Positions 336 through 62,028 of a stretch of 64,000 nucleotides of DNA are shown here, one piece after another. How positions within the stretch are numbered: the first letter of the stretch is position 1; every line of letters begins with the position of its first letter. The notes beneath the pieces were generated by a model, which made no database searches, was not told where the DNA came from, and worked only from the letters and a program-made list of their open reading frames with translations. A program made the position numbers and the translations under genes. The stretch is from Takakia lepidozioides (Eukaryota; Plantae; Bryophyta): the NCBI GenBank assembly GCA_030704615.1, contig CM060731.1, positions 29,946,001-30,010,000 on the forward strand, read 5' to 3'.

Positions 336-369
336 GGCATCCTTGAGCGCGGAGGGGTTTCACGCAATA

Positions 370-3216: not shown

Positions 3217-3476
3217 GCCGTAGCCTTGTGGCCATTGACTCCGCGCCCAGTTTGAGCGGAACACAAAGGGACAGAACCTACCTTTGTCAGGGGCCGATGC
3301 CCGTAGACTTACCTTGGAATAAACAATTGATCTGGGTTTTCCAGATATCCTCTAGAAATCCCTTTACACTAGCATCAACCTGCTGTGTGTGGTTTGCCCA
3401 ATAACTAGGCCCCAAAAGGGCCTGGGCGTTTGGCTCAGCCTCGAGACTTTCAAAGTTGGTAAACAGAGGTACAGGC
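3217..3476 (-). mobile_element. 3'-end fragment of the RTE/RTEX-like LINE
   Basis: Reverse complement of 2384-2647 with scattered substitutions. Confidence 0.85.
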
Positions 3477-6400: not shown

Positions 6401-6439
6401 TTTTTTGTGTCTGGAGACGAAGGTAGTGGATCTGCCAAC

Positions 6440-6652
6440 ATCCAGTCCAACAGGTGAAGTCCTAGCAGAACGGGAAGAGGAGATTTCAAGTACCTGAATA
6501 TTAGGCAAGAGGAACTGACCCTGCTAAGATGAAGTTGACTTGGAAGTTGACTTGGAAGCTGACGTGTCCAAGGCCATGTTGGAAGAGTGCAGAATGTCCG
6601 AACAACAGTTAGGCATAAAACCCTGAACTCATTTCCGGTTTGTGACATGGAT
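6440..6652 (+). mobile_element. old diverged fragment of the RTE/RTEX-like LINE
   Basis: Similar to ~1950-2155 (aagtcct.gcagaa, tgaccctgct, gttaggca..aaa, ccctgaact..tttcc.gt.tgtgac). Confidence 0.6.
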
Positions 6653-6659
6653 GAGTGAA

Positions 6660-9600
6660 GGGCAGCCTTGCGTGTGCAAACCTGGGAGCCCTGGAAAAGG
6701 GGAAAGAGGTCCATGATGAGATCGTCAAAGCTGGAATTGTACCAGATGTCATTCTGAACACTGCCCTGGTGGACATGTATGGATGCAAAGGCAGTTTTCA
6801 ACAATATGCAGGCTGAACAAGATGTGGTGTCGTGGAGCGCGATGCTTGCAGGGTATGCACAGCAGGGAGGCTTTGGAGACCTATGAGCAAATGATGGGGG
6901 AAGGGGTGAAGCCCAACCACATCACGTTCCTTTGCGTTTGCAATGCGTGTGCAAGCCTGGGAGCCCTGGAAAAGGGCAAAGAGGTCCATGATGACATCGT
7001 CAAAGCTGGAATTCTACCAGATGTCATTCTGAACACTGCCCTGGTGGACATGTATGCCAAATGTGGGTGCATTAAGGATGCAAAGGCAGTTTTGAAAGTT
7101 CAACAATATGCAGGCTTAACGAGATGTGGTGTCGTGGAGCGCGATGCTTGCAGGGTATGCACAGCAGGGATGTGGGGTGGAGGCTTTGGAGACCTATGAG
7201 CAAATGATGGGGGAAGGGGTGAAGCCCAACCACATCACGTTTGTGTGCGTTTGCAATGCATGCGCAAGCCTGGCAGCTCTGGAAAAGGGCAAAGAGGCCC
7301 ATGGCGACATTGTCAGGGCTAGAATTGTACCCGATGTCATTCTGAACAATGCCCTCATGGACATGTATGCCAAATGTGGGAGCATTGAGGATGCGAAGGC
7401 AGTGTTCAACAATATGGCTGAATGAAATGTGGTGTCGTGGACCGCGATGCTTGCAGGGTATGCACAGCAGGAGCGCGGGACGGAGGCTTTGGAGACCTAT
7501 GAGCAAATGATGGTGGAAGGGGTGAAGCCCGACCACATCACATCTGTGCGTTTGCAAGCCTAGCAGCCCTGGAAAAGGGCAAAGGGGTGCAAGGTGACAT
7601 CGTCAAAGCTGGAATTGTACCAGATGTCATTGTGAACACTACCATGGTGGACATGTATGCCTAATGTGGGTGCATTAAGGATGCAAAGGGAGTTTTCAAC
7701 ACTATGGCTGAACGAGATGTGGTGTCATTGAAGACGATGCTTGCAGGGTATCCACAGCAGGGACGTGGTATGGGGGCTTTGGAGACCTTGATCAGATGAT
7801 GGGGCAAGGGGTGAAGCCCAACCACATCACGTTTCTATGCATTAGCAATGCGTGTGCAAGCCTGGCAGCTCTGGAAAAGGGCAAAGAGGTCCATGGCGAC
7901 ATGTTCAGAGCTGCAGTTGTACCAAATGTCATGCTGAACAATACCCTCATGGACATGTATGAAGGGAGCGCTCGACAGTATGGCTGAATGAGATGTGGTG
8001 TCGTGGAGTGCGATGATTGCAGGATATGCACAGCAAGGGCGTGGGATGGAGGCTTTGGAGACCTATGAGCAAATGATGTGCGAAGGGGGTGAAGCCCAAC
8101 TACATGACGTTTGTTTGCAGTTGCAAGCCTGGCAGCCCTGGAAAAGGGAAAAGAGGTCCATGGTGACATTATCAAATCTGGAATTGTACCCGATGTCATT
8201 CTGAACACTGCCCTGGTGGACATGTATGTCAAATGTGGGTGATTCAAATGGAGTGTTTGACAGTATTGCTGAACGTGATGTGGTGCGTGCATTGAGGCTG
8301 GACTTGAGGGGGATGGCCCTGTGGGGACTGCCCTTGTCAGCATGTATTGCAGGTGTGGGAGTTTGATGGATGCCACCCGAGTATTTGACGTGCAATGCCC
8401 AAGCGAGATGGGCTCTCATGGACTGCTATGATTGTAGGATCTGCTCAGCATGGTCATGGTCTTTTTAACTCTTTCAGCGCATGCAAAGAGAAGGCATGAA
8501 GGCAGATATTGTCTCTTTTATTAGTGTCCTCAACGCTTGTGCTGGCCCGGAGGCTTTAGAACGGGGCAAGCAGCTCCTTGCCAGCATCATCAAAGCTGAA
8601 TTTGAGTCAGATGTTGGACTCGGGAATGCCCTTGTCAGTATGTATTGCAAGTGCAGGAGTGTGATGGATGCACTCAATGTGTTTGACAGAATGCCTAAGC
8701 GAGATGTGGTCTCATGGACTGCGATGATTGGAGGATGTGCACAGAGTGGTCATGGTGAGGAGGCTTTCAAACTCTTTCGACAAATGCAAAGAGAGGGTGT
8801 GAAGCATCCCTGGAACAGGGCAAGTGGGTCCATGCCTACATTATCAAATCTGTGTGTGAGTCCGATGTGTACGTCAGGAATGCCCTCATTGATTTGTTTA
8901 CCAAATGTGGGAGTGTAGAGGATGCACGGGAGGTGTTTGACAAAATTCTTAAACCAGATGTGGTCTCATGGACTGCGATGATTATAGGATACGCTCAGCA
9001 TGGGCGTGGTCACGAGGCTCTCCAACTGTTTGAACTGGTGTGAAGCCAAATGAGGTCACATTTATTGGTGTTCTCTCTGCATGCAGCCATTTGGGCCTTG
9101 TAGATGAAGGTGGTCATTATTTTCAATCCATGTTTCAAGAGCATGGCATTACACCAACAGAAAAGCACTGCACCTGCATGGTTGACCTCCTTGGCCATGC
9201 AGGGCGCTTGGATGAAGAAGATTTCATTGCCAACATGGCACTCAAACCAGGTGCTTCAGTGTGGGGGGCCTTGCTTGGTGCCTGCAGAATCTATGGAAAT
9301 GTGGAGTTAGCAGAGTGTGCTGCAGAATGTATTTTCAAGGTGGAATCACAAGATGGATACATTTGCCGTTGAAGATAGATCTCACCCACAAGCAGAGGAG
9401 ATCTATGATGCGTTCGAGAGATTGACTTGGCAGATTAAGGAGGCGGGATATGTGCCTGAGACACGCTTTGTGTTGCGTGACGTGGATCAGCAGATGAAGG
9501 AACATGCTCTTTACCACCACAGCGAAAAGCTGGCCATAGCTTTTGGGCTCATTAGCACACCCCCTAGGACCCCTATCCGCATCATTAAAAACCTATGTGT

Positions 9601-9730
9601 ATGTGGGGACTGCCACACTGGCACCAAGTTGATATCCAAAATTGTTGCACGAGAAATTATTGCAAGGGATGCCATCTGCTTTCATCACTTCAACAATGGG
9701 GTGTGTTCTTGTGGGGACTACTGGTCATAA
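6660..9730 (+). pseudogene. PLS-class PPR-DYW pseudogene 2
   Basis: About 5 further degenerate triplets, then more divergent PPRs (8290-9040) and E1. A deletion removes E2 and the PG box near 9355. The DYW domain has HHSEKLA, CGDCH and the terminus CSCGDYWS*. Confidence 0.9.
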
Positions 9731-10758: not shown

Positions 10759-11067
10759 TTGTTTGACTACAAGGTTCATCGGTTTTTACAAGAACATAAG
10801 TTGAACTCGCTTAAAATAAACGGTCTTGGGAATCAGCTCTGGCCTCACCAAGCTGCTTGGTGGAACCCCCCACCTATGCGGGCTCTCGGGGAGGCGCAGC
10901 TTGCCTGGTCAACCTATCTATTCTTCCCTTTGTCTCTTCTTGCGTCCTGGGTGGGTGCAGTGTCTCTTCATTAACCCCCCCAATGATGCGGGCTCTATTG
11001 GTTTGGTCAATGTCTATGCACCTAACTCTGCTATAGATCGCTCTTTGATATGGTGTCTTATTAAGGA

Positions 11068-12016
11068 TAGGCAGATTGTAATTGACCAAGAGAACGGGCC
11101 ATGTGCTCCAACTTGTGGATTGAGCTCCGTAGGGAGTTACACCGTCTAAGGCCAATCCAAATCGCAGAGATCGTGGCTCTGCAGCAAAATCCGCAAATGT
11201 GGTGTCAATGTGTCTCCATGCTTTGTTATCAGCTGGATGTCGAACCAACCCATCCTGGCTCTTATGTCTGTCGTGCCATGTCATGAGGTTAGCGATCGAT
11301 TTACATCGGTACATACGTTTCAACCTTGGAATGACAGGAAAGTGTCGCAATAGTTTCTTGGGCACACTTCCACGATCTGGAATGTAACGGGAACTGCGGC
11401 ACACTGGGCAAATGTCTACATTCTCATACTCCCCACGGAAGAGTACACAACCACGCTCACAGGCATGAATCATGGTGTACTGCAATCCCATCTTGGCAAT
11501 CATGGTTTTTGCTTCATAGTGAGTTTTCAGCAATGAATTCTCTTTAGGCAAAAAACTTTTACGTAACAATCCCCGAAGCTCATCTACAAATGCATTGGTG
11601 CACTTGTGGGTAGTGCATGCGTTCAGCAACATCAAAGTTGCTTGTAGCCGGCTGATGGAGCACCCTTCAAAAAGTGGACATTGCGACTGTCGGAATAGTT
11701 TATCATACTCGGGATCAACGTGCAGGTGAGCATTCTCATCAAATTCATTGTCTCCGGAATCGTCGAGATCATCGTCATGATCGGCAAATGTGTGATCGGT
11801 TCCACCATGAATGGGGTCCTCTCTGTTTGCATCTGCAAAGAGAAACGCTTCCTGCAATGCACGCTGCATTTCTACCTCCAATCCATCACTCTCATCTGCG
11901 TTCTCTGTGACATTTGGCTCCCGTTGTGCCGCAGGGCCTTCGTCTTCATCTTCTGAATATTCACATCCCTGCATCCCAATAGTCATCTTGTGAGTGGACC
12001 AACAACGATGTGACAC
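11068..12016 (-). mobile_element. CACTA/En-Spm transposase (TNP2/Transposase_21-like) N-terminal fragment
   Basis: Reads IHAC..GCVLFRGEY...CPVCRSSRY, FPVIPRLKRMY, RHPAD..AWRH.D, LRFGLALDG..P, STWPVLLVNYNLP. It is truncated at the L1 junction. Confidence 0.9.
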
Positions 12017-12722: not shown

Positions 12723-14716
12723 CTTGCTTGCCCTTTAGTGGAGCATTGGGTTCTATCTGGAGATTTTAATATGGTTGAATCCCCTGAGGATATGATGGGG
12801 GCTCATGATTCTGGCCTTGCCTCGGCAGAGGCTTCTGAATGGGAGGCACTTATTCTATGTGTGGGCCTTGCAGACAGCTATGCCTTTCCCCTTTCTACAG
12901 CCTTCTCTTGGACAACCAATCGGGCTCCGCTGGGTCTGTGCATGGCAAGGCACGACCGCATTTATTTTTCTTCTTCCCTTGTCTCTTGGTTCCGATACTT
13001 GCCTATGGGTCCTATCCTCGCGAACTTTGATCATGCAGAGATCTCGGCGCTACTTTAGTCTCCTGGACCTAGGGCCCGGGGCCGGGGGCTTTGCATGATG
13101 AACATCAGTATTCTTTCTGATCAGTCTAGTCTAGATGCTCTCAAATTGTGCTGGTCCTCTTCTTCTTCCCCCTTTCTCTCACCGACCTTATCTTTTCTCA
13201 ATAAGCTGGATAAATGTCGTTTGTTGGGCCTCAGTTTAGCCAGGGATTCTGCCCTGAAAAATAGCAGATATGAGCGGGCCCTTATTAAGTGCTTGAAGGT
13301 TTGCCAAAAGCGGTTAGAAAGAGGCCAGCAAGGGCCTCAAACTCTCGTTTCCTTGATGGAAGCTAAAGCCAAGCTTTCAGCTCTGCACCTTTCTAAGGAC
13401 CGCTTGATGAGAATGAAGGCTGGGATCAATTGGTTGTTGAAAGGTGAAAAAATGAACAGTTATTTTTTTCCTAAAGCCCGACAGAGGATGGCTGGTCAGG
13501 GAATCAGTTGTTTATATGACAATTCCATGGTCCCTTGCTCTCACCCAAAGTTGCTTTCTTCCATTGCTAGAGATTATTTTTCAGCTCTTTTTTCTTCGGA
13601 GCCTGATTCTCCTGCCTCCCTGAATGCTAGAGATGTGGTGTACAGTATGATCCCCCCTCTACTCTCGCCAGAACAATCTGACTCTCTCAATGTGCCTTTC
13701 GAATTGATGGAATTACAAGATGTCATTCAGAGCCTTAAAGTGCTTAAAGTCCCGGGGGCTGACGGCATCCCAGTTGAATTCTTTGATTCTTTGTGGATGA
13801 TTTTTGCTGAGGACTTCTTGTCCATGGCCAATGATATCCTCTTAAAGAAAATTATGCCATCCCAGATGTCTTTGGGGGTTATTGCTCTTATATTTAAGAA
13901 AGGGGATAGGGCGGATATAGCTAATTACCGCCCTATTACCCTCCTTAACTCTGCATATAAAGTTATTGCCAAGGCATTGGCTATGCGACTTCGAAAGCTG
14001 CTACCTGTCATGATTCGACCGGCCCAGACTGGCTTTGTGAAGAACCGGTTCATTCTGGACAATATTATCCTAGCCAATGAGGCCCTACATTTCGCTTCCG
14101 ATTCTAATCAACCTCTGGCTATGTTGATGTTGGACTTTGAAAAAGCTTTTGATAGGATCAATTGGGGCTTCCTTCTTAAGGCTATCCAAGGTTCTGGGAT
14201 CAACGGTAGCTTTCTTGAATGGATCAAGATTCTCTTGTTTTCGGGTTCCAGCAAAGTTTTAACCAATGGATACCTCTCCTCTGCTTTTCCTCTTCAGCGT
14301 TCTGTCAGGCAGATGCCCTCTTTCTCCCTTCCTCTTCTTGATTGCGGCCGATTGCCTTGGTTACCTCATGGATGCTCAAGTTAGGCTGGCTGGCCTCATC
14401 ATCCCAGTTCCTGGTTCTCTTCCCTGTAATTTAAAAATGTCCATGTATGTAGACGATACTGTTTTATACTTTAGGAATGCTGACATCCAGAACATTAACT
14501 TGGGGCTTGAATCCTTGAACTTCTTTTGCCTTGCTTCTGGTTTTAAGGTGAATTGGGGAAAATCTGTAGGGATTCTCTCTTTGGGTGCGGCCGGGGCTGC
14601 GCATGTTCCCCCTTGGGGATTGGATCTTGGTTTGCGGTGGTTAGAAGATGGTGAATCCCACTCTCTGCTAGGCCATCTCATTGGTCACCACATCAGCTCC
14701 GAGGTCCGTTATCTGT

Positions 14717-30100: not shown

Positions 30101-33100
30101 GAAAGTGCCTACCAAGATCGTCGCGGAAGATCACTACAATTTGCTGGTTGGCACCCACTGAAAGCTCTGCCACATGGACTGCGAGCTCATCGTCTCCGGC
30201 TGTTACAGAGGTCACCTATTTTCACCACAAACCCACAGAAACAATCGGGTGCTAAATATAAATCACTGAGGGAAGCCACCAACAAGTTCCAGTGAGTGTT
30301 ACAACAGTCAGTTGTACCTCACAACAGAAGCAGGTTCTAGAATGAGAATTGGGTCAGAATCAAAACGGCTGCTCATAAGGTAAAAGGCTTGAGGGTGCAA
30401 ATGTAGATGGGCAGATTGATATATGGAGTTCATCCTTATTTCTCAGTCTATCAGTCGAACATGTTTGGGACAAGGATTGATTGATTAAATTAAAAATCTT
30501 TCCAGTTTTACTACCAAACCCAGTGACAAACTTTCAAGTACAATACAATCAGATAATTTGATTGAACAAGACACACAGATAGATTATAACATCGAACAGA
30601 AGAAATGAAATGAAATGAAACCAAACCTTATACCGTCCGCAGAAAGTGATTAAATTAAAAATCTTTCCAGTTTTACTACCAAACCCAGTGACAAACTTTC
30701 AAGGACAATACAATCAGATAATTTGATTGAACAAGACACGCAGATAGATTACAACATCGAACAGAAGAAATGAAATGAAATGAAACCGAACCTTATACCG
30801 TCCGCAGAAAGCTCAAGATTCTATCGTCACGGAGAACTAAGAATGTCTCTCGATAGAAATGGAGTTCTGTTTTAGAGTGGCCGGCTTCCATGTTTGCCTG
30901 ACATGGAAGAATGCAGTGATCTGCTCAAAGTCTTATACATCAATTCAAACGAATTTGCTGGCAGAGTGATCATACAAAAGTTCCAACAGTGAAGGATAAA
31001 TATAGCAGATGAGAGCCCACCTCTGTAACACGAACACAAGTGGCAACTTCAGAGCGTCCTGTGATCCGATCTCTTGCATGGATGCACGCGACCTCTCCTC
31101 TCTCTGATGTTCGAACACGTCCATCATCCAAAATGCTTAGGAGTCCAGCACCAATGCCTCCCTCATGTACCTTTTGAATAAGACATTTTTGGCTACCAGT
31201 TTCAGTAGGTGGACATAGGTGAGAAGATTTTATTTTATGTGCAATGCTTTGATATTGTGCAAATGACATACCCTGCCTCCCTTGACCACACTCCTGTTGG
31301 TTAACGTCTCAGTATATAACCATAGCTATGACATAGCTATAATATATCAGAAGCTCTGATACATCACTGACTGATAGGATGACATATGATATAGCTATGT
31401 TATATCACAAGCACAGCAGTACAAGTCATTTTATCACTGATACCTTTAAACTGGTGGATTCTATCATAAGACGTTGTTTGCCGTAGCCTTGTGGCCATTG
31501 ACCCCGCGCCCAGTTTGAGCGGGAACAAAAGGGACAGAACCTACCTCTGTCAGGGGCTGACGTTGGTAGTTAGGACTTACCTCCATATAAAGAATTAATC
31601 CGGGTTTTCCAGATATCCTCTAGAAATCCCTTCACACAAGCATCAATCTGCTGTGTGTGATTTGCCCAAAAACTAGGCCTCAGGAGGGCCTGGGCTTTTG
31701 GCTCAGCCTCGAGACTTTCAAAGTTGGATTCTATAGAGAGAGAAGTAAAGGAAGAAGGTTCCACAGGGGGGCCCCGAGGCCCCATGGGACAATGTAGGAC
31801 AACAAGCAGCTAATCAAAAAACACCAAACATCATCCAAAGGTGAAGTGCCTCGAGAGAGGTGCAACTAGGAGTTCAAACAGGAATTTGCATTCATTGTCA
31901 GAAACAAACCTTGGAATGGACATATCCCTCCCAGAGAGAACAAACTCTCCTGCTTGCCACATCCCGTCTATGTACACTCCACACTTGAATGAATGTAGGA
32001 AACAAGAAATGGTGACATGGTATCTAACTCACATGCATGGCGGAGTAGACCACTGTGCGTCCACTCCTCTCAGTATCTATGCGTGCTGGGAAGTGCTTCG
32101 TCCACTGGGGGAGAAGCGGTGAGGATGTGTAGTGGGGAGGCAGCAGCCATGTTGCTCTCATACCCAGAGCCAAAGGCGGGTCTGGAACCACCCATATTGT
32201 GTCAGATGCCTTGTACTCTTTGCGCACCAATTGGTTGTGAATGTTGAAATGGCAAGTAAATGATAAACCAACTGTTGTCCTTCCAGCAGACCTGGGCCCA
32301 ACGAAAATTAGGTCAATGTTTAGCCCAACGGCTTAACAAATTACCTCTATTGTTTTCAATGTAGCAAGACAGTTTGTTCACAGACTTTCCACATATACCT
32401 GCCAATCGCTCTGGCAGAGAAACCTCCATCAGTGCCTGGAGTTGCCTGATGTCCGCCTACATGTGCCAAGCGCTCACTTTTGTTGCTGGCTTTGTCTCCT
32501 TCAGCAGAGGTAGTCTCGGTATCCTCCATCCCAGCGTTGTCAGCAATGCGCAAACCCAGTACCTGCAAACGATAATATCACTCGGCATCGGCTTCTGCAC
32601 AATAGGTCATGCATTGTTGTGACGACTTCTAATTGACAATGGTTACACCTTTGCCAGTTAACATACACCTGGCATAATCCACCTGCAGTTTAAATAGTTC
32701 TCATTGTAAAAAAGTGAATCTCATCCCTGATTATCAGGGCATACCTCTCCATTTCCCTTACTCCCCACTCCATGATATTTGGCCCTGATCCCACCCTACT
32801 TTTCTCTACCTTTTGGATAGCAGCCTCTGTTTGAGTCTCCCTCTACAAGATACTAACCTGTTCATCTCCAATGAGCCACTTGTAATTAGTGCACAGCTCA
32901 AAGAACGAGAACAAGTCTTCCTGCACATTGCCAATACAGATGATAAAAAAGCCAGTCCAGCGAGCACAAGTTGAAGTCAATCCCTACCATATGTTGCTGC
33001 TATATCCCTGAAGCAACCCCAGGGCCCACAACAGTAAGGCAGAAGCTCATTTCTATCCAAAATCGGTTCTAGAGAAGGAGGAGATACATGCAAAGGAGGA

Positions 33101-47329: not shown

Positions 47330-50152
47330 TCAAAGCTTCCAATAGCACGAGCGAAATCCAAACCCTGCGAGTTAAGTTAGGAAGGACATCTGAAGAAAGG
47401 ACAGGGAGGCCAAGTGGATTCAGAAAGTGTTTCAGAGGCAAGGTTTTATGGAGAGTGCGGGGAGGCGAGATGAAGCCGCCCCGGCAACCTCTGCCCGACG
47501 TAAAATAGATTGAGCTTGAGCCTTTTGCAAAGCAACATAAACTTGTTGTCTAAAGAAAGCTACAAGAACAGAGGCGTATGGGCTTCCAAGGCTTTTGTTT
47601 CCCGCTGCACGATGGGCACATGTGTGAAGGAACTCGTTGAACTGATGATGCAAACAACCAAAGATCTCAACTGCCAAAGGAAGGAATGTGTCTGTGGAAT
47701 GATGTGCCCGATAGTCATGCTCCTTTCTCTGCGCAGCTACTGAAGCGGCAACTCCCTGTGATGAGGCTGTGCAGGGCAAGAGATCCGACCTAGTAGGATC
47801 AGCGATGACAACGTCCGCCAATGTACGCAGTCCGTCATGTGAGAGAACAATGTCAACCCGTCGTCGAGTGGAATGGTGATCGTGGGTCGATGGGAGTATG
47901 TGCCCCTGCTCTCGAATGACATGTATGTCAGCATCACGAGCAACCGCAGCTGCTACATCCCGGACGACGTCATGGGTCGCAGTGCGTTCTCCATAAAGTG
48001 GATTCAGAGAGGACGACCAGACCAATTGAGGAGGATAAGACCTTTTGAGGTGGCATTAGTATATTCTCTTGAGCTGTACAAATGTAAACTTTGAGGGAAT
48101 ATTGGTGTTTATGGATTTGAATGCAATCTCACAAGCCTGTAATTGGGTCAGGAACCCAGTTTTCCTGTGAAGATGTACGCCGAGTGAATCGAGAGGATGG
48201 CGACAAACACACTGTTGTAGTTCTAACACAGAGATATGCGGAAGATCCAGTCGAACTCGTAGGGAGGTGGTAAATACAGTAAAAGACATACGGAAGGGTG
48301 CAATGGTTGGTCGTACCGTGAGCCACGCGCCTACTCCGGACCCTGCGCACGAGAGAAGTCTGGCCCGATGTATATCTGAAGGAGCATCGGAAAGCATGCT
48401 GGCAAATGAGTGTCGGTGCACGCGTTCCATGATGGTATCTTGTAAGTGCTCAAGACCTTGAGTGACCAACTGTTCAAAGGGTGGCAGACAAGCCCGTGCT
48501 GGTGTTGGGATGAGATCCCGTGCTAAACAAAGATGTTGCTGGAAGGACAAAGAGCCATCATCGATATGGGCAACCACCTCCATGAGAAAAGGGCGTTGCT
48601 GACACAGAAACCGAGATGTCAAGGAGCGACTAAGCCCAACTACCTAGGAAGGCAGCAGGGGCAGTGACAACTGTGGATAGTAAACCCACTCCTCCAGAAG
48701 AGATCAGGAGGGTAGCTTGACGACATGCCAAGGGCCCCTACTCAGTATCAAATGCACCTGGGCCTAATAGACGACCAAAAATCCCCCTAACAATCGTATC
48801 GAAAGAAGACAGAAGCTCCACAAACTGGGGAGTGGGGGAAAACAATGCAAAAGATAATAAGGTCGCTGTAAAAAGCATTTAGTGAGAATGCCATGGGCTA
48901 CCTGCATATCCCCTAATTTGGGAAGAAGCTCTATATGGCTTGTATCCTGTAGCAAAGCGTCTTGGAGGAAAGATGTTGTGTAAGGGGTAGTACCAAAGGG
49001 AACACCTAACACTCGAATACCCTCAGATGGTGCTAGAAAGTCGACAGGGGGCACGAAATCTGAAGGCAGACCAGAGGGTGACAAAACTGTGGATTTGCGA
49101 GGTTGAACAGTGAGCCCTAGAGAGTGAAGTTGGGTAGCAAAGTAATGAAAGCCAAAAGGATATCAGTGGGAGGGCCAGTGATGTGGGTACCATCAGCAAT
49201 AGAAGGAAATATACAGGATTAGAAGGCTTACGCAGATGAGCGAAGGGCTCGCAAGTGGGCAAAAGCAAAAAGAGGTCCCCCTAATGGATCGCCCTGACGG
49301 GTTCTTACTTCGGACTGGATTATAGTAAGATCTCCGGTACGGGTATGATGACTGTAAAACAAAAGGGTGGAGGAAGCATAAAACAATCTCACAAAGGGAA
49401 TGAGTTGATGGCATGCGCCGTCGGCTGATCGCAGTTCCTGAAATATTTCTGATCTGGACACCGTGTTGAAGGCGTTGGTCACATCCACCTGAAGGACGAC
49501 CCAGTCTGGATGAAGGTCAAGGGAAGCCCAAATCCCATGCACCACCGCTTCACAACCTCCCGAAGTAGCGACCCCAAACTGATGTGGAGAAAAGTGAGAA
49601 GGAAAGACCTCCTAAAACTGGATGCAGATAGAGCGGCTCACCAAGCGATACAAAACCTCCCCCGCTGCAATAGGACGAATCCCACTTGTGTTCTCGGACA
49701 TGGCCAAGAGCCGTGATGCTCCAAGTAAACGTGTTACTGGGGTAGGTATATGTCCCATTGCAATGAAAGAGCAAAGCTTGGAAAAGCCACTAGCAGAGTC
49801 ATGTGGATTGAGACAATCACGGAGGTGCTCATACACCAAACCACACAGACCGGCTGCTGCAAGATGAGGGCTACGAATGAATGCTTGTATGAAAGTGTCG
49901 CGATCCAATTGAAGGTCCTCATCAGGTTCAAAGTCCTCCACAAAGGAAGGAAGGATGTCGTCCGCACTGGGGTGAAAATTCTCCAGTGTGACAGTACAAG
50001 CCGAAGGCGGTGCTGGGGTAAGAGGAGCAAGAGCTCGAGCTGCACTAGAATACTCTTCTGCCCGGCCTAGCATAAGACTCCGACGAAGACGCATGCGGAT
50101 GGATGGAGTGGCCTGGTGTGGGCTATCATGAGCTATTCGCGCTGCAAGTGCT
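47330..50152 (-). mobile_element. CRE-like (restriction-like endonuclease) non-LTR retrotransposon, RT-CCHC-RLE part, degenerate
   Basis: Motifs GIRPIAAGEVLYRL, LQVDVTNAFN, RQGDPLG, SIADGTHI (catalytic DD mutated), VLGVPFG, AWL, C-x-C...H, HD.V, RVDI...D, and FLPLAVEIFG. Many frameshifts. The 3' boundary is approximate. Confidence 0.8.
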
Positions 50153-51097
50153 TCACTAGTACATATTAATGTTTTTATGACTATGGATATCACCGCATTT
50201 GCAGTGATAAGTGCTGTTATAACTACCTCACTCTGCAGTGACAAACACGAAGTCAATTCTACCATGACTACGGAGTGATAAGTGCAAAGTCATGGTCGTC
50301 AGTGAGGACGTGGCATGGGATAGTGATGCAGGGTTTGGTGATGTAATCATAGCAAATATGACTACATGACTGAAAGTTATGACTAAGATTACGACTACAT
50401 CACTACAACATTGCGCCTACATGGAGAGGCCTTTGCGTGACACGTGGGATCATTGGGCATTGACATGTGTAATCATCACCTGATGGCACAGTGGAGTAGT
50501 CATATCTTTATGACTACACGACTATGGGTATGACTATATCACTACAACACTACAGATGGCACGTGGTCTCGTTGGAGCAGGTGTGACTGACACGTGTTGA
50601 TCATGTAAATTTTATAATTTATTAAATGTTATTTAATTTTAAATGACTAATTTAGATATTAAATTAAATTAAATTAATATGAAATTTAACTTTGTGGAGC
50701 TCTCATAATTGGCAAAGGGGAAAGGCCATCTATACCAAGACACAACCCCTATGCAGGGAAAGAGAGCATGCATTAATCTTTCAATGATCAACGAATCGAC
50801 CCCCAACCCTGCTGGCAGTTGCAAAGAGTGGCAAAGAAAGATTCTACCACCAACCCTGTTGCATAGACTGGCAGAAGCAACAACATCATACAATATGAAA
50901 GACACAACTACAATCAAACATGTCATCCACAGAAACACCACAACACAACCTCAGAGGACATTGCACCTTCGAACGATATTGGATGTTAATACATCAAACA
51001 CTAACATGGTGTTCGAACTAGTCTACATATATATATATTCCCAAGATATACTTTATTCTTCAAGCACGATGTTGCTAAGCACTACCACAACAAGAAA

Positions 51098-53260
51098 TTG
51101 ATCATCTACGCAGGTTTCTTTGTAGCTGTCCTTCCACAGGGAATCATAGGTAATCTGGAGCTTGAAATCCAACCCTATTGGATGAATCTGGACCCACACT
51201 CTATCCCTGCCCCTTCAGCTATCTATGCTTCTACACAAATCATGCATACATCCTTGCTTTGCTGCTAGTAGCTGACAATGACAGCCTAGATTTGTTCTAG
51301 GAAACACCCAACTCGACTTATCACACTAGTTCCTATGCTCAATGGCATCTGCTACTATCTATAATACAGCAGGCATTCACCTTTTTGCCTCGATTGTCCC
51401 ACCATTGACTGAAGTCAGAAAGTATTCATTCCACAGCTTCTCCTCGTCTCTGTTACCTGTTTCTGGACACTTTCCTGTTGTCACATTGGCAGTACCATGT
51501 CAAAGTCACTCCAAACTATCAAAGGTTCACTCAACCAGCTAACTTGCAGAATTCAACATGAAAATTTAGGACCGATTCTGATTAGAGGGAAAAACAGGGT
51601 GAATTGTGTTGAAGAAGGTGCCTTGATTACCAGTGCCTGATTTTATATGGAATCATAGGTAATCTGGAGCTTGAAATCCAGCCCTCTTGGATGTATGTGG
51701 ACCCACACTCTATCCCTGCCCCTTCATCTATCCATACCTCTACACAAATCATGCATACATCCTTGCCTTGCTGCTAGCAGCTGACAATGACAGCCTAGAA
51801 TTGTTCCAGCAAACACCCCAACCCTACTTATCACACTAGTTCCTATGCTTAATAGCATATGCTACTCTCTGTAATCTATCAGGCATTCACCTTTTTGCCT
51901 CGATTGTCTCACCATTGACTGGGGTCAGAAAGAATCCATTCCACATCTTCTCCTCGTCTTTATTACTTGTTTGTAGATACTTTCATGTTGTCACATTGGC
52001 AGTATCATGTCAAAGTCAAGTGCTCCAAACTATCAAAGGTTCACTCAACCAGCTAACTTGCAAAATTCAACATGAGGGCCGATTCCTATTAGAGGGAAAA
52101 ACAGGGTGAATTGTGTTGAAGAAGGTGCCTTGATTATCAGTGCCTGATTTTATCAATTGTGTCGCTGCTGCTGCGGCTTCCAGTTGACCATCTACCCATG
52201 CAGGTTTCTTGTAGCTATCCTTCCACATGGAATCATAGATAATCTGGAGCTTGAAATCCAGCCCCTCTTGGATGAATCTGGACCCACACTCTATCCCTGC
52301 CCCTTCAGCTATCCATGCCTCTGCACAAATTATGCATATATCCTGGCCTTGTTGCTAGCAGCTGACAATGACAGCCTAGAATTGTTCCAGCAAACACCCC
52401 AACCCTACTTGTCACACTAGTTCCTATGCTGATTTGCGTTTGCTTCCAATAGACATTCACCTTTTTGCCTCGATTGTTCCACCATTGACTGGGGTCTTAA
52501 ACGTATTCCTTCCAGAGCTTCTCCTCAGCTACCTTGCAGAGTTCAACATCAAAATTCAGGGACGACTCTGATAGTAGGAAAAACAGGGTGAAATGTGTTG
52601 AAGAAGGTACCTTCATCAGCAGTGCCTTGTTCTATCAATTGTGTTGATGCCGCTGCTGTTTCCAGTTGACCATCTACCCACTTGTAGCTATTGGTTTGAA
52701 ATCCGGCCCTCTTGGATAAATCTGGACCTCTATCCCTGGTCCTTCAGCTATATATCCCTGCCTGTGTACAAATCATAAATACATCCTCAGCCTTGCTGCT
52801 AGCAGCTGACACTGACGGCGTGAAGTTCTTCCAACAAACACCCGAGCTCTACTTATAATAGTAGTTCCAATTCTATATTGCATCTGCTTCTCTCTGTAGT
52901 CCAACAGGCATTCACCTTTTTGTCTCCATTGTCCCACCATTGACTGGGGTCGGTAAAGTGTTCATTCCAAATCTTCTCCTCATCTCAGTTATCTGTTTTT
53001 GGATACTTCGTGCGGCCACATCGGTAGTAACTTGTCAAAGTCACTCCAAACCACCACAGATCCACCCAACGAGCTAACTTACAGAATTCAATATGCATCT
53101 CAGGGCCAAGTATGAGAGGCAAAACAGGCTGAAATAGGTTGAAGAAGGTGGCATCACCACATTGTCCTTGACCCATGGAGGATTTGACCGACCATCAACC
53201 CAAAAGGACCTCTTGTGTGTGATGTTTATGTCTGTAGTCCGGTAATGTCGGATTGGCCTG
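51098..53260 (-). repeat. tandem array of ~4 OSB PDF-motif exon/intron units (~460-570 bp) plus one variant PDF exon
   Basis: WWDNRGKK|GT exon ends near 51380, 51890, 52460 and 52915. PDFK-type exons near 51160, 51670, 52250 and 52700. Variant ANPTLPDYRHK...WVDGRSNPPWV near 53170-53257. The units carry indels and stops. Confidence 0.82.
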
Positions 53261-53517
53261 TGAGAACCACCATTGTGCAGCTGAGCAGGCAAAGATTGAA
53301 ACACGACCTGCTAAGACCAATCTGACTCTCCCAAGAACCTTGTAAACATCAGGAAGAATACCAAATCATGGTACTAACAGGAGCCAAAAGCCCACCTCTG
53401 CAGGATGGACAAACTTCTTCATATCGTACATTAAGAAAAGCCAAACCTTGTGATTGCAGTTGTCCCACCATCGTGAAGGATCTTTATAAAACTCATGCTA
53501 GCTCACATCACGAACGA

Positions 53518-54650
53518 GCTAACTTGCAGAATTCTACATGAAATTTTAGGGACGACTCTGGTAACATGGCAAAACAGGGTGAAATGTGTTGAAAAAAACA
53601 CCTTCATTAGCAGCGAATTGTTCTATCAATTGTGCTGCTGCCGCTTCTGTTTCCAGGATGACATCTGGTACAATTCCAGCTTTGACCATGTCACTATGGA
53701 CCTCTTTCCTCTTTTCTAGAGCTCCCACGCTTGTGCACACATTGCAAACACAAACAAATGTAATGTGGTTGGGCTTCACCGCTTCGCATATCATTTGCTC
53801 ATATGTCTCCAAAACATTCCTACCACACCTATGCTTGGTAAATCCTTCCAACATAATTCTCCACGTGATCAAAGATCATTGAGGCATTCTGTTGAACACT
53901 TGGTGAGCATCCCTGATGCTCCGGCACTTAACATACATGTTGACAAGGGCATTGAGTAGTTTTTTGGCGTGAATCCACTTGGGATAATGTGAGTGTGCAC
54001 CTGCTTTCCAGCTTCCAGACCTTCCATCTTGATGCACTTAAGCAAGAGACAGACATACATATCTGAATCTGCTGAAATGCCTCCTTGGTTCAGAGTCTAT
54101 AGAGCCTCAGGCTGCCTGCCGCACAAAGTAGCTTCACATGCCCAGAAGTGCCAGAAGAGGCATTGTTGACTCCCTCTCTTGATCCTCTAATTTCAGAAGC
54201 TGTGGTCATGGTTGAGGTGCCTAAATTTATCAACTGTGTCGCTGCAGCTGCTACCTTTAGTTGACCATCTACCCATGCAGGTTTCTTGTAGCTACTGATC
54301 CACCTGGAATCAAGGTAATCTGGAGCTTGAAGTCCAGCCCTCTTGGATGAACTTGGACCCACACTCTATCCCTGCTCCTTCAGCTATTCATGCCTCTGCA
54401 CAAATCATGCATACATCTGTGTCTTGCAGCTGATAATGACAGCTAGATTTGTTCTAGGAAACACCCAACTCAGCATATTACACTAGTTCCTATACTGAAT
54501 TGCGTCTGCTACTCTCCTGTGTCAGGCATTCACCTTTTTGCCTCGGTGTCCCAGCATTGACTTGGGTCAGAAAAGTATTCATCCACAGCTTCTCCTCATC
54601 TCTGTTACGATTTTTGGATATTTTCCTGTTGTCACAATGGCAGTATCATG
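53518..54650 (-). pseudogene. PDF unit fused to a PPR leader and PPR repeats, then PDF linker
   Basis: ORF 54090..54362 reads KKPAWVDGQL...GTSGHVKLLC. ORFs 53869..54060 and 53546..53872 carry PPRs that run into AAAAQLIEQ...FFNTFHPV. Confidence 0.78.
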
Positions 54651-56344
54651 TCTCCAGCCCTAAAGTTGAGCTACAGTGTGAAATAAGAAAGATGAGAGAC
54701 AATTCCAATGAAGGCAAACTTGTGATGGGCTCATGAGAAGCTTACTTTTTTAAGAAGTAAATAAGAACATCCATTAAAAGATCGGCCATCCTCTGATGAT
54801 TGGTGAATGTACACACGCGCTCATAGAACCTGTTGATACTCTCTACCTCTGACTCGTACTCAATCTCCTTCCGTGGCATATGCATCACATGCCTCTCCTC
54901 TGCCTCCTTCCTTATGTTGGCAAACAAGTGCAAGTCATTGACCATCCACAATAACAGTGTTTCCTATGCAACAAACTTCATTTGCATGTCCATGTATCAT
55001 ATCTATTTGCTCCACAGCTTGTGCTCTCTTTTAGTCTCAATGTGATTTAGGGCTTTCCTATCATATCTTTTAGTACGTCCTGCAATTGATGCCTCATTGA
55101 GACATGTTGATAACATGTCAAGTCAATCTTGAGCACACACCCTACCATATGTAGGTCGTATTGGGGCTTTGGCGGCCCCCAGAGCAGGCAGCTGTCTCAT
55201 CATCTTGTCGGCCACCTGCCATGGTACACTTCCAGTGCTCAACTATCCCACGAGTGCTCCTTACCCCAGGTGTGCAAAACCAGTGATTGAGAGGATGCCT
55301 TGCCAGACTCTAGGCGTGATGAGTCACCCAAAACACAGTATAGTTTTGCATATTTAACAGTCGACCCAACAACCACTGGCACATTCTATAGCTTCCAAGG
55401 ATAAGGCTTAACCCTACAAGGACTCCATCATCTATCAACATGAAGCATACACCCCAAGTAGATAATGACACAAACTTGTAAAGGGAGACCTATAGTGGTT
55501 GGCTCCCTTTCCTCCTTTAAGGATGATTCTGGTAACAAACACACAACAAATAGCAGCCGAGGTTGAAAGACATTCAGCCCAACAAGAGGAGGTGTGTACT
55601 TCAGCAGAGAATGGAGAGGATGCTCGCCAATGTTCACGATGGTCTGACCTTGCAATCAGCTTCAAATGTAAATGGTGTTCCAGGCTCTTGCGCAATGTCA
55701 AAATTTTCTTCTTCCACCCAAATACCTATACTCGTGTAGTCAGTTAGACTTCTTTGTGGTAGAGTGAGAACTGAGGCAAAGGACAATCCTACACTTGGGC
55801 CCTTTGCCCCATGATTCAGGACAGTTTCCATCACATGTGAGAGCCCTTCAATCCTTTCCAGAGTGCCACAAATGAAGGTGGTGTAAGACAGGTAGTTCCT
55901 GTGCAACCGAGAGTCATCATGGTCCTGGGCATCCGTCAATTCTTTCTAGTTGCCATACTAAAAAATATCAACAACAATGACCTTCCGGCCAAGAAGAGAA
56001 GCGAAGATGTTTTAGCAGCAGGAATCCCCCCAAAATAGGTTGCTACACGACGATCATGTGCAATTCTGGGAGGGACAATGCAATGACTAATTTCAGAAAG
56101 GCATAGTTTAGGACCAATAAATATCGTAAAGAGGTGAAGGGACATACAAGGGAGTCATCGCGGGGAGGGGGAGTTTTTGGGGCTGGCGTAACCCGCCCTT
56201 CCTGCATGCGTGATCACAACAATGGAAGGCTGCATTCGGCTCTCACATCTATCCCATTCAGACTAACAACCTATCCTCCACCTAAAACTTATGGATGACT
56301 AAATGCACACCTCCCGGGAAATTGAGGCTTGCACTCCAAACTAC

Positions 56345-57110
56345 ATTCACTCAACCAGCTAACTTGCAGAATTCAACATGGAAATTTAGGGCCGATTCTG
56401 ATAAGAGGAAAAACAAGATGAAATGTGTTGAAGAAGGTGCCTTGATTAAAATATCAGTTGTGCCGCTACTGCTGTGGCATCCAGTTGACCATCTATCCAT
56501 GCAGGTTTCTTGTAGCTATTTGTTCCACATGGAATCATCAGTAATCTTGTGCTTGAAATCTGGCCCACTTGGATGAATCTGGACCCATTCTCTATCCCTG
56601 TTCTTTCAGCTATTTCTGCCTTTGCACAAATCATACACCAATGCCTCCATCCCGCATCCATGTTGGGCAAATATCCCGTGATCATCACACTCCAGGACAC
56701 GACATTTCGTTCAGCCATATTCTCAAACACTCCCTTTCTATCCTCAATACTGCCACATTTGGCATACATGTCCACGAGGGTATTGTTCAGAATGACATCG
56801 GGTACAATTCCAAATTTGACAATGGCACCATGGACCTTTTACCCTTCTCCAAGGCTCCCAGGCTCGCACACACATTGCAAACACAAACGAACGTGACCTG
56901 GTCCGGCTTCACCCCTTCCCGCATTATATGCTCATACGTCTCCCAAGCCTCTATACCACACCCCCGCTGTGCATATCCTCGCCCTTCCTGCATGATTTGC
57001 TCAAGAATAAGCTCAAAAAAGTTGCATCAGTTGCTCTCATGAATAGGTTGCAAAGCCTCAATCCCACGCCCCTGCATTGCATATCCCACGATCATCCCGT
57101 TCCATGACAT
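56345..57110 (-). pseudogene. PPR triplet fragment joined to a PDF exon
   Basis: ORFs 56787..56993 and 56446..56775 read MYAKCGSIED...VVSWSVMITGY, followed by NSYKKPAWIDGQL. Confidence 0.78.
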
Positions 57111-57645
57111 AAATTCTCACTGCTTCGGCTCAATACTACGAAAACATATGGCGCGAGAGACAAAATGAGGCTAAGTCCCAGCCCTCTGTGTTCATGGCTG
57201 AACGTGGGCAACCCTAAAGCAACTTTTTGAATTTTTTAGTTTTTTACACTTTGTGTCATTCCATTGACACAAGTGCTTCGTTAAAGATAGATGGATGAGG
57301 TCACATAAACAGAGCTGTGAAACCTCTTATAGTCATCTAGTCATAAGCTTCTATGGCATGTCATGTGTAGTATTGGTGTAGTCATTTAGTCATAAGTTTA
57401 TATGGCACGTGTCTGACGTGTAGTATTGTGTATGACTACTAGTTATATAAACCAAGCTTATATTCGTGGTCGACAATGTTTGACCGCGGGTCCTAGTCAT
57501 GTAGTAAAACATATGACTGCATTAGATTAAAATATATTAAAATGCGCCCAACAATGGGTTTCATCACCTCGTAGTCACATGTATAGACATGGTTACCAAG
57601 GTTTATATCACCCGTAGTCATAAAAACGTTAATATGTAGTAGTGA

Positions 57646-58800
57646 GCTTGTGCACGTAGATAATGTTCGTCTTGAAGGGTTTCCCAATCCCCAGAGAGAA
57701 ATCTACGAACGGGCACGCGTCTCTCGATGTCCGGATTCACCACCACGTGGAGGCAAAACTAGACACCATAGAGAAAAAAATAGAAAAAGGTGCCAAGCAG
57801 CAATGTCGTAAGGGTCCCGAGCAAGGCGTTCCAAGGGTAAGCGAAAAGCATGTTGTACCTCTCTGCGAAGCGCCATTGGGATGCGTGTATAGAGCCGGGG
57901 ACGGGGCAAACCCAACTGAAATGCTCCCAAAACATCAATGGTCGCAATCCAAAGCCATGCTTGGCAAAAGGAGCCAGTAAGGGGGTACACAAATGACTGT
58001 CTGGAAAAGACTGATGAAGTGTAGAACACGTGTGCCGATGACGCGTAAGCCCCCTGATACGAGCAAACATCCGACCACAACCTGGACAAGGCACTCGGTC
58101 TGGTGGAGAAGATGGTGGTGCTAGTGGTGGGAGATAAGATGGAGCAAAAAAATGGGCAGTCTGATCAGGTGAAACTGTCCGCTGTCTAGAAGGAGGTGGC
58201 GAGCCAGGTGGAGAGGTAAGCTCTCTGGGAGGCCGCCGTGTACCTGAAAGGCGAATTGGGGAAGGGCCACTAGCCCCTTGATTTGGAGTTGTTGTGCCTC
58301 GCTTGGGGTTGTCGGGTATCTTTCCTGTAGAGCTGTGACCTTGGGTAGAGTAGGAGGGTTCACCATCAGCAAGGCTTCCTCTCCTCCGTGGATGAGGGCT
58401 GCTGTGACCGGAGTGGGAGGGTGTAGTAGTACTCTTGGCCCCATTTCTGCTGCTCCTAGGATTGTCTTGAAAAGAGGGACAGGGCCCACCACCAATATTG
58501 CCCCGGGCTGTATCATGGCTATGACAGATGTGCCTAGTGTAAGGGGGCTGACCACCGTGGCGTCTAGGGTTACCTTGTGTGGCAGAGAAGGGAAAAAGGT
58601 AAGGAAATTTACCAGCAGGCGATTTACAAAGAGAGAATACTACCAAATGCTTTCCATAAACCCTACCCACGGCTAACCCTGGTTGGGTTGGACCCATGAT
58701 CCGGTGGTATCCGACGATAGGATTTGGCCACGCAGGCGCTGTCGGCAGATGAGATGCATCACAAGGATAGACGAATGGACACTTTTTTCATCCGTTCATT
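57646..58800 (-). mobile_element. 5' part of the CRE-like retrotransposon (C2H2-like zinc finger)
   Basis: Reads CPGCGRMFARIRGLTRHRHTC, then RFLSGDWETLQDEHYLRAQA, which joins LAARIAH beyond the CACTA insertion. The 5' boundary is approximate. Confidence 0.75.
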
Positions 58801-59328: not shown

Positions 59329-62028
59329 TCAATCAAACAGATTGGTGAGGGAGCTGAGGCCTGTTTGTGAGGTGCCTTCATTGGGGAATTCAATTGCAGC
59401 ACTCTCCTGTACCTCAAAGCCATCATCCTCCGCTGTATCATCCAAAGCCTCATATAGCAGCCAATCTTCACTAGCTGGAGTTTCTGCCTTCTGCCTCCGC
59501 TGCTCAGCCACTTGTTCAGGGGAATCTGGACACATATTCCGCGGCCCTCGCCTAATGGGCCTCTCAGCCACGATGTACTTGTGACCCTCTCGCTGACGCT
59601 CTGGGAACCCTGCCCACACTGTTTTGCAACCAGCCATAACAATATCCCCCTGTAAGTGCTCAATAAACTTCAGACTTACATTTCAACAGCAACCAAATAA
59701 GAGACTATTTGAAAAGAAGGACAGAAACTTCAAAGCAGGCACAAAATGGGCAGAGGAGAATAAACCTGAAAGAAGAGAAGTCAAAGAGGGACCTAACTAA
59801 CCAGCCACAGGAATGGTTAACGAGCATCATGTTAGAGCTGCCTCCCCCGCTCTATCTCAAACCTAGTGAGGAAGAACACCTGACAGGTCCTATAATTGCG
59901 GCACTGCAGGCAAGACTACAGCATCTGTCCTCTTGCAATGCAAGCCATACGACCCTCTCTTACTCTCCTTTCTAACCCCCACCTGTCCCCAAAGTCCCCT
60001 TGAAGAAGTGTCTCAAGAATGTCTTCAGCGGCTTGATGTTTTCAGAAAGAAGCTCCTACTGTTTTGAGTAACAGAATGGATTATCAACTGTTTTTGTGAA
60101 CTTAGGCTATGATATGCCCATTAGGGCCTAGACCCACCTGATAGTAACATTCCTGGGCTGTCAGAGACAGTTGTACTTATTCACCATTCCCTGCAACCGT
60201 TGTTGTGGCATACCCTTAAAGGCTTAGATCTCAGGGGATACTAACCCTTCCAGAGCCAGCTGTGGAGTCTCAGCCCACCAAAGTCGTCCCAAAATTGCAA
60301 TAACAACCAAGCACAGCCAATAACAATCTGGTTACATTGAGCTTCTGATATACAAGCTCGTTTACACATCATGCTAGAAAACACAATCTGCCCAGAGAAA
60401 GAGAGTACTATGTCATGCAATGCACAGTAAAACAATTGACGTAACACATGCATAACAAACTGCATGTGTATTAACAGGTAACCAGCAAATCTTGTGTCCA
60501 TGGAGACGCACCAGCAAAATGGTGGAGGACAATGGAAGCAGCCACAGTTACATTGAGGGAGGCCGTGCCAGGACCACACTGAGGAATGTAGACAAAGAAA
60601 TCACAAATCTCCATCTCCTTCTCCGACAGTCCTGTTCCCTGCAACTCGCCGGTGCAAGGATGTCCATGTTACACATGAAACTTGTGAAATATATGATTCT
60701 ACTTGCATAGGATGTGTTAGGTATGCGTTGAAATACACTTACTACAGCATATTAAGAATAAAGAGTCTTACATGCAGGTTAGAATCCGTTGAATCAGGCT
60801 TCATACTAACTTGTAAATCATTGAGTCAACTCACCTCATTACCAAGGACAAATGCAGTGCTGCCAGTGAAAGGGTGGGAATTCACCCGGGCTGCTCCCTC
60901 TGTGATCTCCACTCCACATATGGCTACATGCTTTGCCTGCAAATTTCTTCTTCAGTACAGGGGTGGGAGAGAGTCATGGCATGAGCAGCCCCAACAATCC
61001 GACATGGATAAAGACAAAACATAATCAAACATCCGTTAAAAATTGTAGCATTTGCAGTCGGCTTCAACATGGCATATCTATGGTTAGATTACAGGACCCC
61101 CACATCACAAACAGTTCCATCAAATGGTTACCTTTAAATACTGGGCAGCTTTGCCCAGAGTGTGGAAATGGCGAAACTGGAGATGCAATGTGGCACCGTG
61201 GCTCCCAAATGCATTGAAATCCTTTCTTCCCACCAGAATTAACTCTGACACGCCAAACGCAGTAGAACTCCGGGCCAGTGTCCCAAGATTATGCCTCTTA
61301 GCTACGTTATGAATTAGAACAAAGCTTTCTAGCCTTGCCCTGCCATCGCTGTCCAGTTTCTTCGCCCCCACACCAGCCCCCACATCCGCGGTCCCAGCAC
61401 CCTCTCTTCCGTTGAGTACCTCCACAGCATCATTTGAAGAACTCCATTCGCGGTTAGAGGCCACGCACCTCAGGTTATTGGGAAGCTCATCTGTTGACGA
61501 CGACCCTGCAACGTCAGAAGGAGAGTTGAAAGGGTAAACTCGTCCTGCATTCACCTGGGCCTCCAACTGGTTATCTGGACCACTCACTTTGCACATCAGG
61601 GGATTGCTTGTGCCCAAGTTTGCAGTTGGCTGCCTACGCTCGGATTTGGAATCCCCAACTGGATCATGATTGAGAGGCATCTTCTCTTCGTGGAGGAGTT
61701 TGAAATCAATGAGGTCTATGAGATTTTTCCTTATATCATCTCTCAAGAAATCAAACGTTACAGGTGGGAATAAAATTTGCCTCCTCTGTGCCTCTGACAG
61801 CTCCTCAAATTTCATTACAGTAGATGCTGGCCATATGCGGGTACCAGGCAGAGCGCCATAGCTCATTTGTCTACAGATGGGAGCTCCGACCGACTGATCC
61901 TTTGATGTGCCACAACTTTCAGAGTCTGGAGAACTGAGTCCAACATCCTCAGGACCTAAACCGTCTTCCAAAACTGCTTCCTCCTCATCCGACAAACCTG
62001 CGTTAACCGTCACATGCAACTCCGCCAT
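59329..62028 (-). CDS. SpoU/TrmH-family tRNA/rRNA 2'-O-methyltransferase, 4 exons, long N-terminal extension
   Basis: Approximate exons: 62028-61132 (HNVAKRHNLGTLARS), 60936-60835 (GVEI..AFVLGNE), 60637-60510 (GLS..CDFFVYIPQ..SLNVTVA), and 59620-59329 (VWAGF.ER). The true start may lie further upstream. Confidence 0.85.

Follow-up and report, generated by a model that had tools for sequence, protein, structure and literature searches.

The joined PDF and PPR sequences at 54652-53513 (-) in a 64,000-nucleotide stretch of Takakia lepidozioides DNA (the window, by which we mean that whole stretch) are probably transposon-borne, non-functional debris of PDF-PPR-type genes, carried within a 7.5-kb non-autonomous CACTA-like element. 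They are not a new PPR-then-PDF protein, and the locus, a gene graveyard, encodes no protein. The locus is a pointer to other plants, in which a PDF module fronts many predicted PPR and PPR-DYW RNA-editing-type proteins that have a conserved gene structure. The original prediction had read four PPR/PDF joins in the window as signs either of an intact PPR-PDF parent gene or of repeated recombination between neighbouring donors.

The window is plant nuclear DNA with many transposons and PPR pseudogenes. On the minus strand, 54652-53513 comprises a PDF module, then a 560-bp PPR fragment (a leader and ~2.5 repeats) and then a PDF-module tail, and stops and frameshifts interrupt all of it. The first part (54652-54217) resembles the repeat unit of a neighbouring PDF array and the last part (53656-53513) continues the same unit; together they make up one ~482-bp PDF unit, with the PPR fragment (54212-53654) sitting between them. 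The start of the last part repeats the final 44 bp of the first, and a 44-55-bp repeat of the PDF unit stands on either side of the PPR insert. The ends of the element and the PDF-derived sequences of the window are listed below (here and elsewhere, slashes within a sequence or between coordinates mark splice points or breaks).

50154-50183 (+), left terminal inverted repeat CACTAGTACATATTAATGTTTTTATGACTA of the CACTA-like element, pairing with 57615-57644 at 31/34 identity
57615-57644 (-), right terminal inverted repeat of the same element
51098-53146 (-), four decayed PDF modules in tandem and the tail of a fifth, with a period of ~482 bp
~51098-51460, ~51533-51975, ~52047-52530 and ~52526-52985 (-), the four array modules, each exon set with stops or frameshifts
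53068-53146 (-), the fifth-module tail, part of the tandem PDF array
53150-53513 (-), a more diverged PDF module (exon a ~53447-53494, exon b ~53161-53263) with weak profile matches (E 0.017-0.044)
53513-53656 (-), PDF-module tail made up of the end of exon b and inter-module spacer, repeating the 44 bp that precede the PDF-to-PPR join (J1, below)
54217-54352 (-), exon b of the PDF module under study, reading ..HPRGLDFKLQIT and, after a 1-nt frameshift, DSRWISSYKKPAWVDGQLKVAAAATQLINLG
54353-54533 (-), intron-like spacer of the same module, closed by stops in every frame and located where PDF-coding genes have their conserved phase-0 intron
54534-54603 (-), exon a of the same module (RDEEKLW..), frameshifted and ending at the donor AAAAAG/GTGAAT
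56353-56637 (-), partial PDF module that starts inside the intron (E=2e-06) and has the best-kept second half, IHPSGPDFKHKITDDSMW
385-948 (+), PDF-module tail (385-496) and a full module (526-937; E=2.3e-10), outside the CACTA-like element

The copy at 385-948 lies in the orientation opposite to the copies at 51-57 kb; exon b of its full module (844-939) reads THPTGPDFKLQMTYDSLWINSYKKPAWGNGQL, and a LINE interrupts this module at ~940. Directly after the module, an ORF at 1011-1460 (+) matches RVT_1 (LINE-type reverse transcriptase, E=1.6e-22), and a second RVT_1 ORF is found at 13095-14381 (+). Other features of the window include a 302-aa ORF at 61123-62028 (-), whose end matches the SpoU-type RNA methylase family (PF00588, E=2e-07) and which may be a host-gene exon, and a 165-bp unit that occurs twice at 97% identity (30482-30811).

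PDF is a ~50-residue motif of OSB proteins with a conserved Pro-Asp-Phe signature, and the PDF motif of AtOSB1 has been reviewed as sufficient for ssDNA binding (PMC6963530). In their true frame the PDF modules of the window consist of two pieces, exon a (DEEKLWNEYFSDPSQWWDNRGKK) and exon b (IHPxG(P/L)DFK(H/L)(K/Q)ITYDSLWxxSYKKPAWVDGQLEAAAAATQLI), split by a stop-rich spacer of ~185-200 bp that separates ..WWDNRGKK from IHPxGPDFKHK in each module. Pfam family scans alone could not decide the identity of these pieces, because no Pfam model matched them in a scan of the window's ORFs. A profile made from an alignment of eight stop-free exon-b pieces (A1) was searched against 1.84 billion representative proteins and matched 33 of these 1.84e9 at E<=1e-3. 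The best match (P0001, E=2.1e-15) is a protein of 1371 aa in which three PDF motifs at the N-terminus precede a long PPR array and an E motif; it is encoded by an uninterrupted ORF on a 4755-nt contig. Another match (P0002, E=5.9e-10) has a Pfam SSB domain and then three PDF motifs, and is therefore a true OSB-type protein. The reverse search, in which an HMM built from 107 public PDF motifs was run on the window, recovers the modules there (best E 2.3e-10). Given agreement of the profile searches in both directions, the window motif is assigned as a genuine OSB-type PDF motif, and the identity that had been proposed for it holds. A first reading of the 'PDF exon' as non-coding satellite that was in frame by chance was ruled out by both profile searches. 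The PDF residues originally quoted are correct in part: SYKKPAWVDGQL makes up the final third of the PDF motif, whereas the 'APDY' upstream of it is out of frame, and in its true frame the copy has LDFKLQ. Only 2 of the 7 window copies retain the P-D-F triplet, with PDFKLQ at 844-939 (+) and PDFKHK at 56525-56602 (-).

The window modules are predicted to be spliced at a conserved donor and acceptor that split the motif. The donor AAAAAG/GTGAAT stands directly after ..GKK in 6/6 units that include this stretch, and the acceptor ..GGGTCCAG/ATT (..TCCAG/ATT) stands before IHP.. in 4 units. The predicted splice product, WWDNRGKK-IHPRG-PDFKHK, has the spacing of intact proteins, for example WWDNRGKK-QNPRY-PDFKHK in P0010. 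A phase-0 intron occurs at ..RSEK/VNARYPDF in a Sphagnum compactum gene and at ..RSEK/VNAKYPDF in a Diphasiastrum complanatum gene, and a corresponding site is probable in Calypogeia fissa, in which the last exon begins GNAKYPDF, ..RSEK precedes it in the protein and the first-half exon is unmapped. An OSB-like gene of the angiosperm Kingdonia has exons ending ..WWDNRFNK, with the intron at the same position within the motif, so this intron belongs to PDF modules in general. Intron position had been considered as a discriminator between OSB and PDF-PPR origin and was dropped, because the OSB-like gene has the same intron. The annotated product of Kingdonia uniflora GIB67_023385 (P0035, 1160 aa) has ~ten PDF motifs before a weak SSB match at 935-1023; this order is the reverse of the usual OSB order, and the annotation may be a merged gene model.

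The PPR-derived sequences of the window are as follows.

53654-54212 (-), PPR fragment with a leader and ~2.5 PLS-type repeats (Pfam), bearing stops and frameshifts
56638-56993 (-), second PPR fragment within the element, decayed, with ~80% identity to members of the 3.4-9.7-kb array
9-346 (+), PPR fragment at the window start, outside the element, ending in join J4
2890-3116 (-), second PPR leader copy, without PDF-like sequence upstream
3440-9720 (+), chain of frameshifted PPR-DYW pseudogenes, the closest relatives (80-87%) of the element's PPR fragments

Pfam matches include PPR_2 for 53549-53872 (-) (E=1.2e-08) and PPR for 12-476 (+) (E=2e-15). The fragment at 53654-54212 (-) shares 87% identity with 3999-4424 (+), and its leader shares 85% with 2890-3116 (-); the fragment has no intact frame to an E or DYW end and terminates at J2. 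The pseudogene chain consists of 306-bp PLS-triplet tandem repeats that are 82-84% alike, with a leader fragment joined into it at ~3990, a truncated E/DYW part at ~5940-6400 and a DYW end at ~9500-9720 (..CSCGDYWS followed by a stop). PDF and PPR sequences meet at four joins.

J1, 54213-54216 (-), in-frame, from PDF exon b to the PPR leader; the PDF-unit homology extends to 54217 and the leader homology begins at 54212
J2, 53648-53666 (-), PPR mid-repeat to PDF exon b (VDGQLE..), with ~19 nt resembling both partners
J3, 56637/56638 (-), PPR ..AQHGCGMEAL to PDF intron, blunt, ~50 nt before the acceptor
J4, ~327-385 (+), PPR to PDF, at the same site as J2

All four had been seen in the original prediction, and their basic description stands. 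The PDF exon reads in frame into the PPR leader in an ORF at 54090-54362 (-) that crosses J1 (..DSRWISSYKKPAWVDGQLKVAAAATQLINLG, then TSTMTTASEIRGSREG..VKLLCAAG); the PPRs read in frame back into PDF in an ORF at 53546-53872 (-) that crosses J2 (two PPR motifs, then ..VPDVIL/ETEAAAAQLIEQ...); and the further PPR-to-PDF joins placed at ~56640 and ~335 correspond to J3 and J4. Their use as joint witnesses of one architecture fails, because the PPR-to-PDF joins occur in mid-repeat, on ~19 nt of imperfect similarity, or run into the PDF intron; at most J1 mirrors a native gene. The break at J2 falls inside a PPR repeat (..AGIVPDVIL), and the ~19 nt align with both the PPR parent (CCAGATGTCATTCTGAACA) and the PDF unit (TAGATGGTCAACTGGAAACAG). 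Many close paralogous contigs depart from the locus at exactly 53652/53654 and go on as ordinary PPR (..NTALVDMYAK), so J2 is not the common form. J3 cannot be a coding fusion, since its blunt junction enters the PDF intron. An origin of J2 and J4 by copying of a single event was considered and rejected: their PPR parts are only ~65% identical, whereas the flanking PDF parts are 85% identical, and therefore either the microhomology served repeatedly or the PPR part was exchanged by gene conversion. The best match elsewhere to the PPR part of J4 is 77%. By their sequence the PPR-to-PDF joins are illegitimate junctions, that is, putative recombination scars, and for these joins the repeated recombination offered as the alternative is borne out.

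The copies are decayed, as had been stated, with stops or frameshifts in every PDF module exon set and in the PPR fragments. Mean pairwise identity among PDF units is 0.87 for exon a and 0.84 for exon b, against 0.85 for the intron, so that the exons are no better conserved than the intron, and the variable sites of exon b number 23, 20 and 20 at codon positions 1, 2 and 3. This pattern is one of neutral drift. KLQ stands instead of KHK in 5/6 copies, 4 of which also have L for P (LDFKLQ); because these lesions are common to copies, the units multiplied after the motif was damaged. A live or recently live gene, with spliced modules and a PDF-PPR-PDF protein or a regulatory transcript as its product, would explain why two ORFs cross joins in frame, why splice-site-like sequences are conserved among units and why runs guessed to be RNA contain contigs similar to the PDF and PPR parts. 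Such a gene is very improbable in view of the stops and frameshifts, which lie in the exons of every module and also between the two ORFs, the neutral divergence pattern, the loss of the PDF triplet from the copy under study and the absence of PDF behind PPR from every intact protein checked; the guessed-RNA contigs themselves map to these repeated parts with 4-10% divergence from the locus and so come from paralogues.

The read data are contigs rather than raw reads: up to 46% of the words of the stretch occur in DNA runs, and two further runs are only guessed to be RNA. In DNA run X1, summed depth is 1e5-1e6 over the PDF and PPR parts and 125-270 over the low-copy middle of the element (54800-56200). 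This ~1000-fold difference in summed depth places the PDF and PPR parts in very large families. Summed depth in this run has a local peak (~7e5) at 53200-53400, which overlaps the diverged PDF module at 53150-53513 and may contain another small repeat. In run X7 (guessed RNA), one contig joins 55207-55327 to 55599-55725 in the low-copy middle, skipping 271 bases; the skipped segment is not bounded by GT..AG on either strand, and the skip may therefore reflect a deletion variant and not splicing. A further explanation, to which we give very little weight, is that the assembler created chimeric joins in so highly repeated a region, where thousands of contigs fit two places in the PDF and PPR parts: the DNA runs that contain up to the above share of the stretch's words are independent, J2 and J4 present the same junction site twice with diverged flanks, and the sequence around the junctions is continuous and diverged, with no identical repeats at the breaks.

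Intact proteins that combine PDF and PPR are encoded in other plants. A search with the PDF region of P0001 recovered PDF + PPR proteins from Adiantum capillus-veneris, A. nelumboides, Ceratopteris richardii, Sphagnum and several transcript-like contigs. A search with the PDF region of the Sphagnum protein recovered 63 proteins, from many Sphagnum species, Diphasiastrum complanatum and Calypogeia fissa, all with PPR families and many with a DYW deaminase (PF14432). Members are annotated as hypothetical or PPR proteins and include Sphagnum fallax BDL97_19G044000, Diphasiastrum complanatum O6H91_01G141200, a Calypogeia fissa protein, Adiantum capillus-veneris GOP47_0009037 and Ceratopteris richardii KP509_14G038700. 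The PDF is N-terminal of the PPR array in all members for which positions were checked (9 from the P0001 search and 9 of the 63-protein set), and none of these 9 + 9 has PDF behind PPR. In the Sphagnum and Diphasiastrum genes, and probably also in that of Calypogeia, the last exon begins at the second PDF half and takes in the entire PPR-E-DYW part. The Adiantum gene has no introns and encodes PDF and PPR in a single ORF of 2406 nt (801 residues).

These proteins make up a real PDF-PPR(-DYW) fusion family that is widespread in seed-free plants (ferns, mosses, a liverwort and a lycophyte). The intact parent once proposed for the locus is thus right as to the union of PDF with PLS-type PPRs, with or without DYW, and wrong as to PDF behind the PPRs. 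The fusion-family idea survives the objection that no intact PPR+PDF ORF exists, since intact ORFs are found in other plants; a second objection, that the junctions are transposable-element cargo, fits this locus. Among open papers and preprints we found no paper on the PDF motif or OSB combined with PPR or DYW, and the architecture seems to be undescribed, as had been supposed.

J1 is the only one of the four joins in the native PDF-then-PPR order. Its order, reading frame and exon continuity are as in intact PDF-PPR genes, and the ~47 residues between the WV of the motif and the first LCxxG.L motif resemble those of fern proteins. J1 is most simply a putative relic of a PDF-PPR(-DYW) gene, or an amplified old cargo copy. 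It could itself be a rearrangement junction, because homology of the leader copy at 2890-3116 starts at the same nucleotide as that of the J1 leader and this copy is without PDF upstream: a search for a PDF remnant upstream of 3116 gave nothing above shuffles. A first impression of ~20 nt of extra homology was not upheld. We regard a native origin of J1 as somewhat probable and a rearrangement as quite possible.

Rearrangement at J1 is part of a more general alternative, a two-donor shuffle in which the PDF array came from an OSB gene, the PPR pieces came from separate genes and every join, even J1, arose through recombination or template switching in the cargo. The public PDF closest to that of the window belongs to the OSB-type P0046/P0010 cluster (P0046 has an SSB domain), with 35/58 identities against 27/58 for the best PDF-PPR proteins in a 58-position comparison done exon by exon, without a joined model of exon a and exon b; the modules may therefore come from an OSB gene. 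The leader copy without a PDF remnant is in keeping with separate donors. The 44-55-bp PDF repeat around the PPR insert, the dual similarity at J2 and a possible GGCA match at J1 are expected of two template switches, and the Kingdonia OSB-like gene also has a multi-module array with two exons per module. We nevertheless consider this alternative unlikely. A tblastn search of the window with three SSB parts found no OB-fold or SSB remnant (nothing below E=0.4), and no SSB domain was matched in Pfam scans of the window's ORFs. The agreement of J1 with intact PDF-PPR genes in order, frame and exon continuity also speaks against it. No cluster of diverging contigs is listed at J1, though both of its sides are very high-copy and one such cluster is listed at J2, and a diverged paralogous contig has GGCAC at the same distance from the leader as at J1. 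Finally, the second half of the window motif (KPAWVDGQL) resembles fern PDF-PPR proteins.

The element that encloses these sequences spans 50154-57644. Its terminal inverted repeats are 30 nt long and begin CACTA, with 0 matches expected in shuffles. Extending the repeat by one base gives GCT on both sides (50150-50152 and 57646-57648); without this extension the flanking triplets are CTT and AGC. Short subterminal repeats connect 50357-50553 with 57327-57400, and a 49-bp unit is repeated twice in tandem at 57330-57432. No transposase family was matched in Pfam by the ten internal ORFs tested, and the ORFs of the low-copy middle match no Pfam family. The cargo comprises at least 7 decayed PDF modules and two PPR fragments. 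These features fit a putative non-autonomous element of the Pack-CACTA type. A tnp2 (CACTA/En-Spm) transposase ORF lies elsewhere in the window, at 10877-12016 (-) (PF02992, E=4.1e-22), and could supply transposase in trans.

Under the preferred reading of the locus as cargo debris, pieces of PDF-PPR-type genes would have been captured by a CACTA-like transposon and the two-exon PDF modules amplified into an array as its cargo. J1 would have been retained from a native PDF-PPR(-DYW) gene or from an old cargo copy. J2 and J4 may have arisen by illegitimate recombination or template switching, with different PPR donors, at a stretch where PPR codons (..PDVILN) resemble PDF codons (..VDGQLE), and J3 by a blunt break into the PDF intron. 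The locus would thereby offer a worked example of a transposon and short microhomologies reshuffling PDF and PPR modules.

To our knowledge, the PDF DNA-binding module is known only from OSB proteins. If PDF adds nucleic-acid binding to the PPR and PPR-DYW proteins, it would bear on the way in which editing factors locate or retain their targets; if it anchors these factors to nucleoids or organellar DNA, it would bear on the coupling of editing to organellar DNA. A wider proposal, which we put forward only tentatively and as a minority view, is that PDF-PPR(-DYW) is an old undescribed architecture of organellar RNA-editing factors of seed-free plants, that CACTA-type Pack elements here amplify PDF modules and PPR 5' ends, and that microhomology-aided exon shuffling spreads or multiplies PDF before PPR genes.

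Three known or newly recognized systems resemble parts of the locus. With OSB proteins the window modules have in common the same ~50-residue motif (..LW..F..P..WWDNR..K /.NP..PDFKHK.T...LW.....P.WV..L). OSB proteins have an N-terminal OB-fold/SSB-like domain and then PDF motifs, whereas the OB-fold/SSB part was not found in the window, whose modules are dead and lie next to PPR fragments. With PDF-PPR(-DYW) genes the window has in common PDF before PLS-type PPRs, a site for a phase-0 intron (predicted in the window) that splits the motif, and the contiguity of the second PDF half with the PPRs, and J1 shares their order and frame. The proteins of that family are intact and have 1-3 PDFs and a complete PPR array with an E or DYW end, in contrast to the window's decayed modules (at least 7) on both sides of 2.5 PPR repeats, its different linker and its PDF closer to the OSB type. 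The element differs from Pack-CACTA (Pack-TYPE) elements (Catoni et al. 2019, PMC6379663) in its ambiguous 3-bp target duplication and in a cargo that includes a tandemly amplified module array, and shares with them CACTA-type terminal inverted repeats around host-gene fragments, the lack of an internal transposase, and the merging of pieces from different genes.
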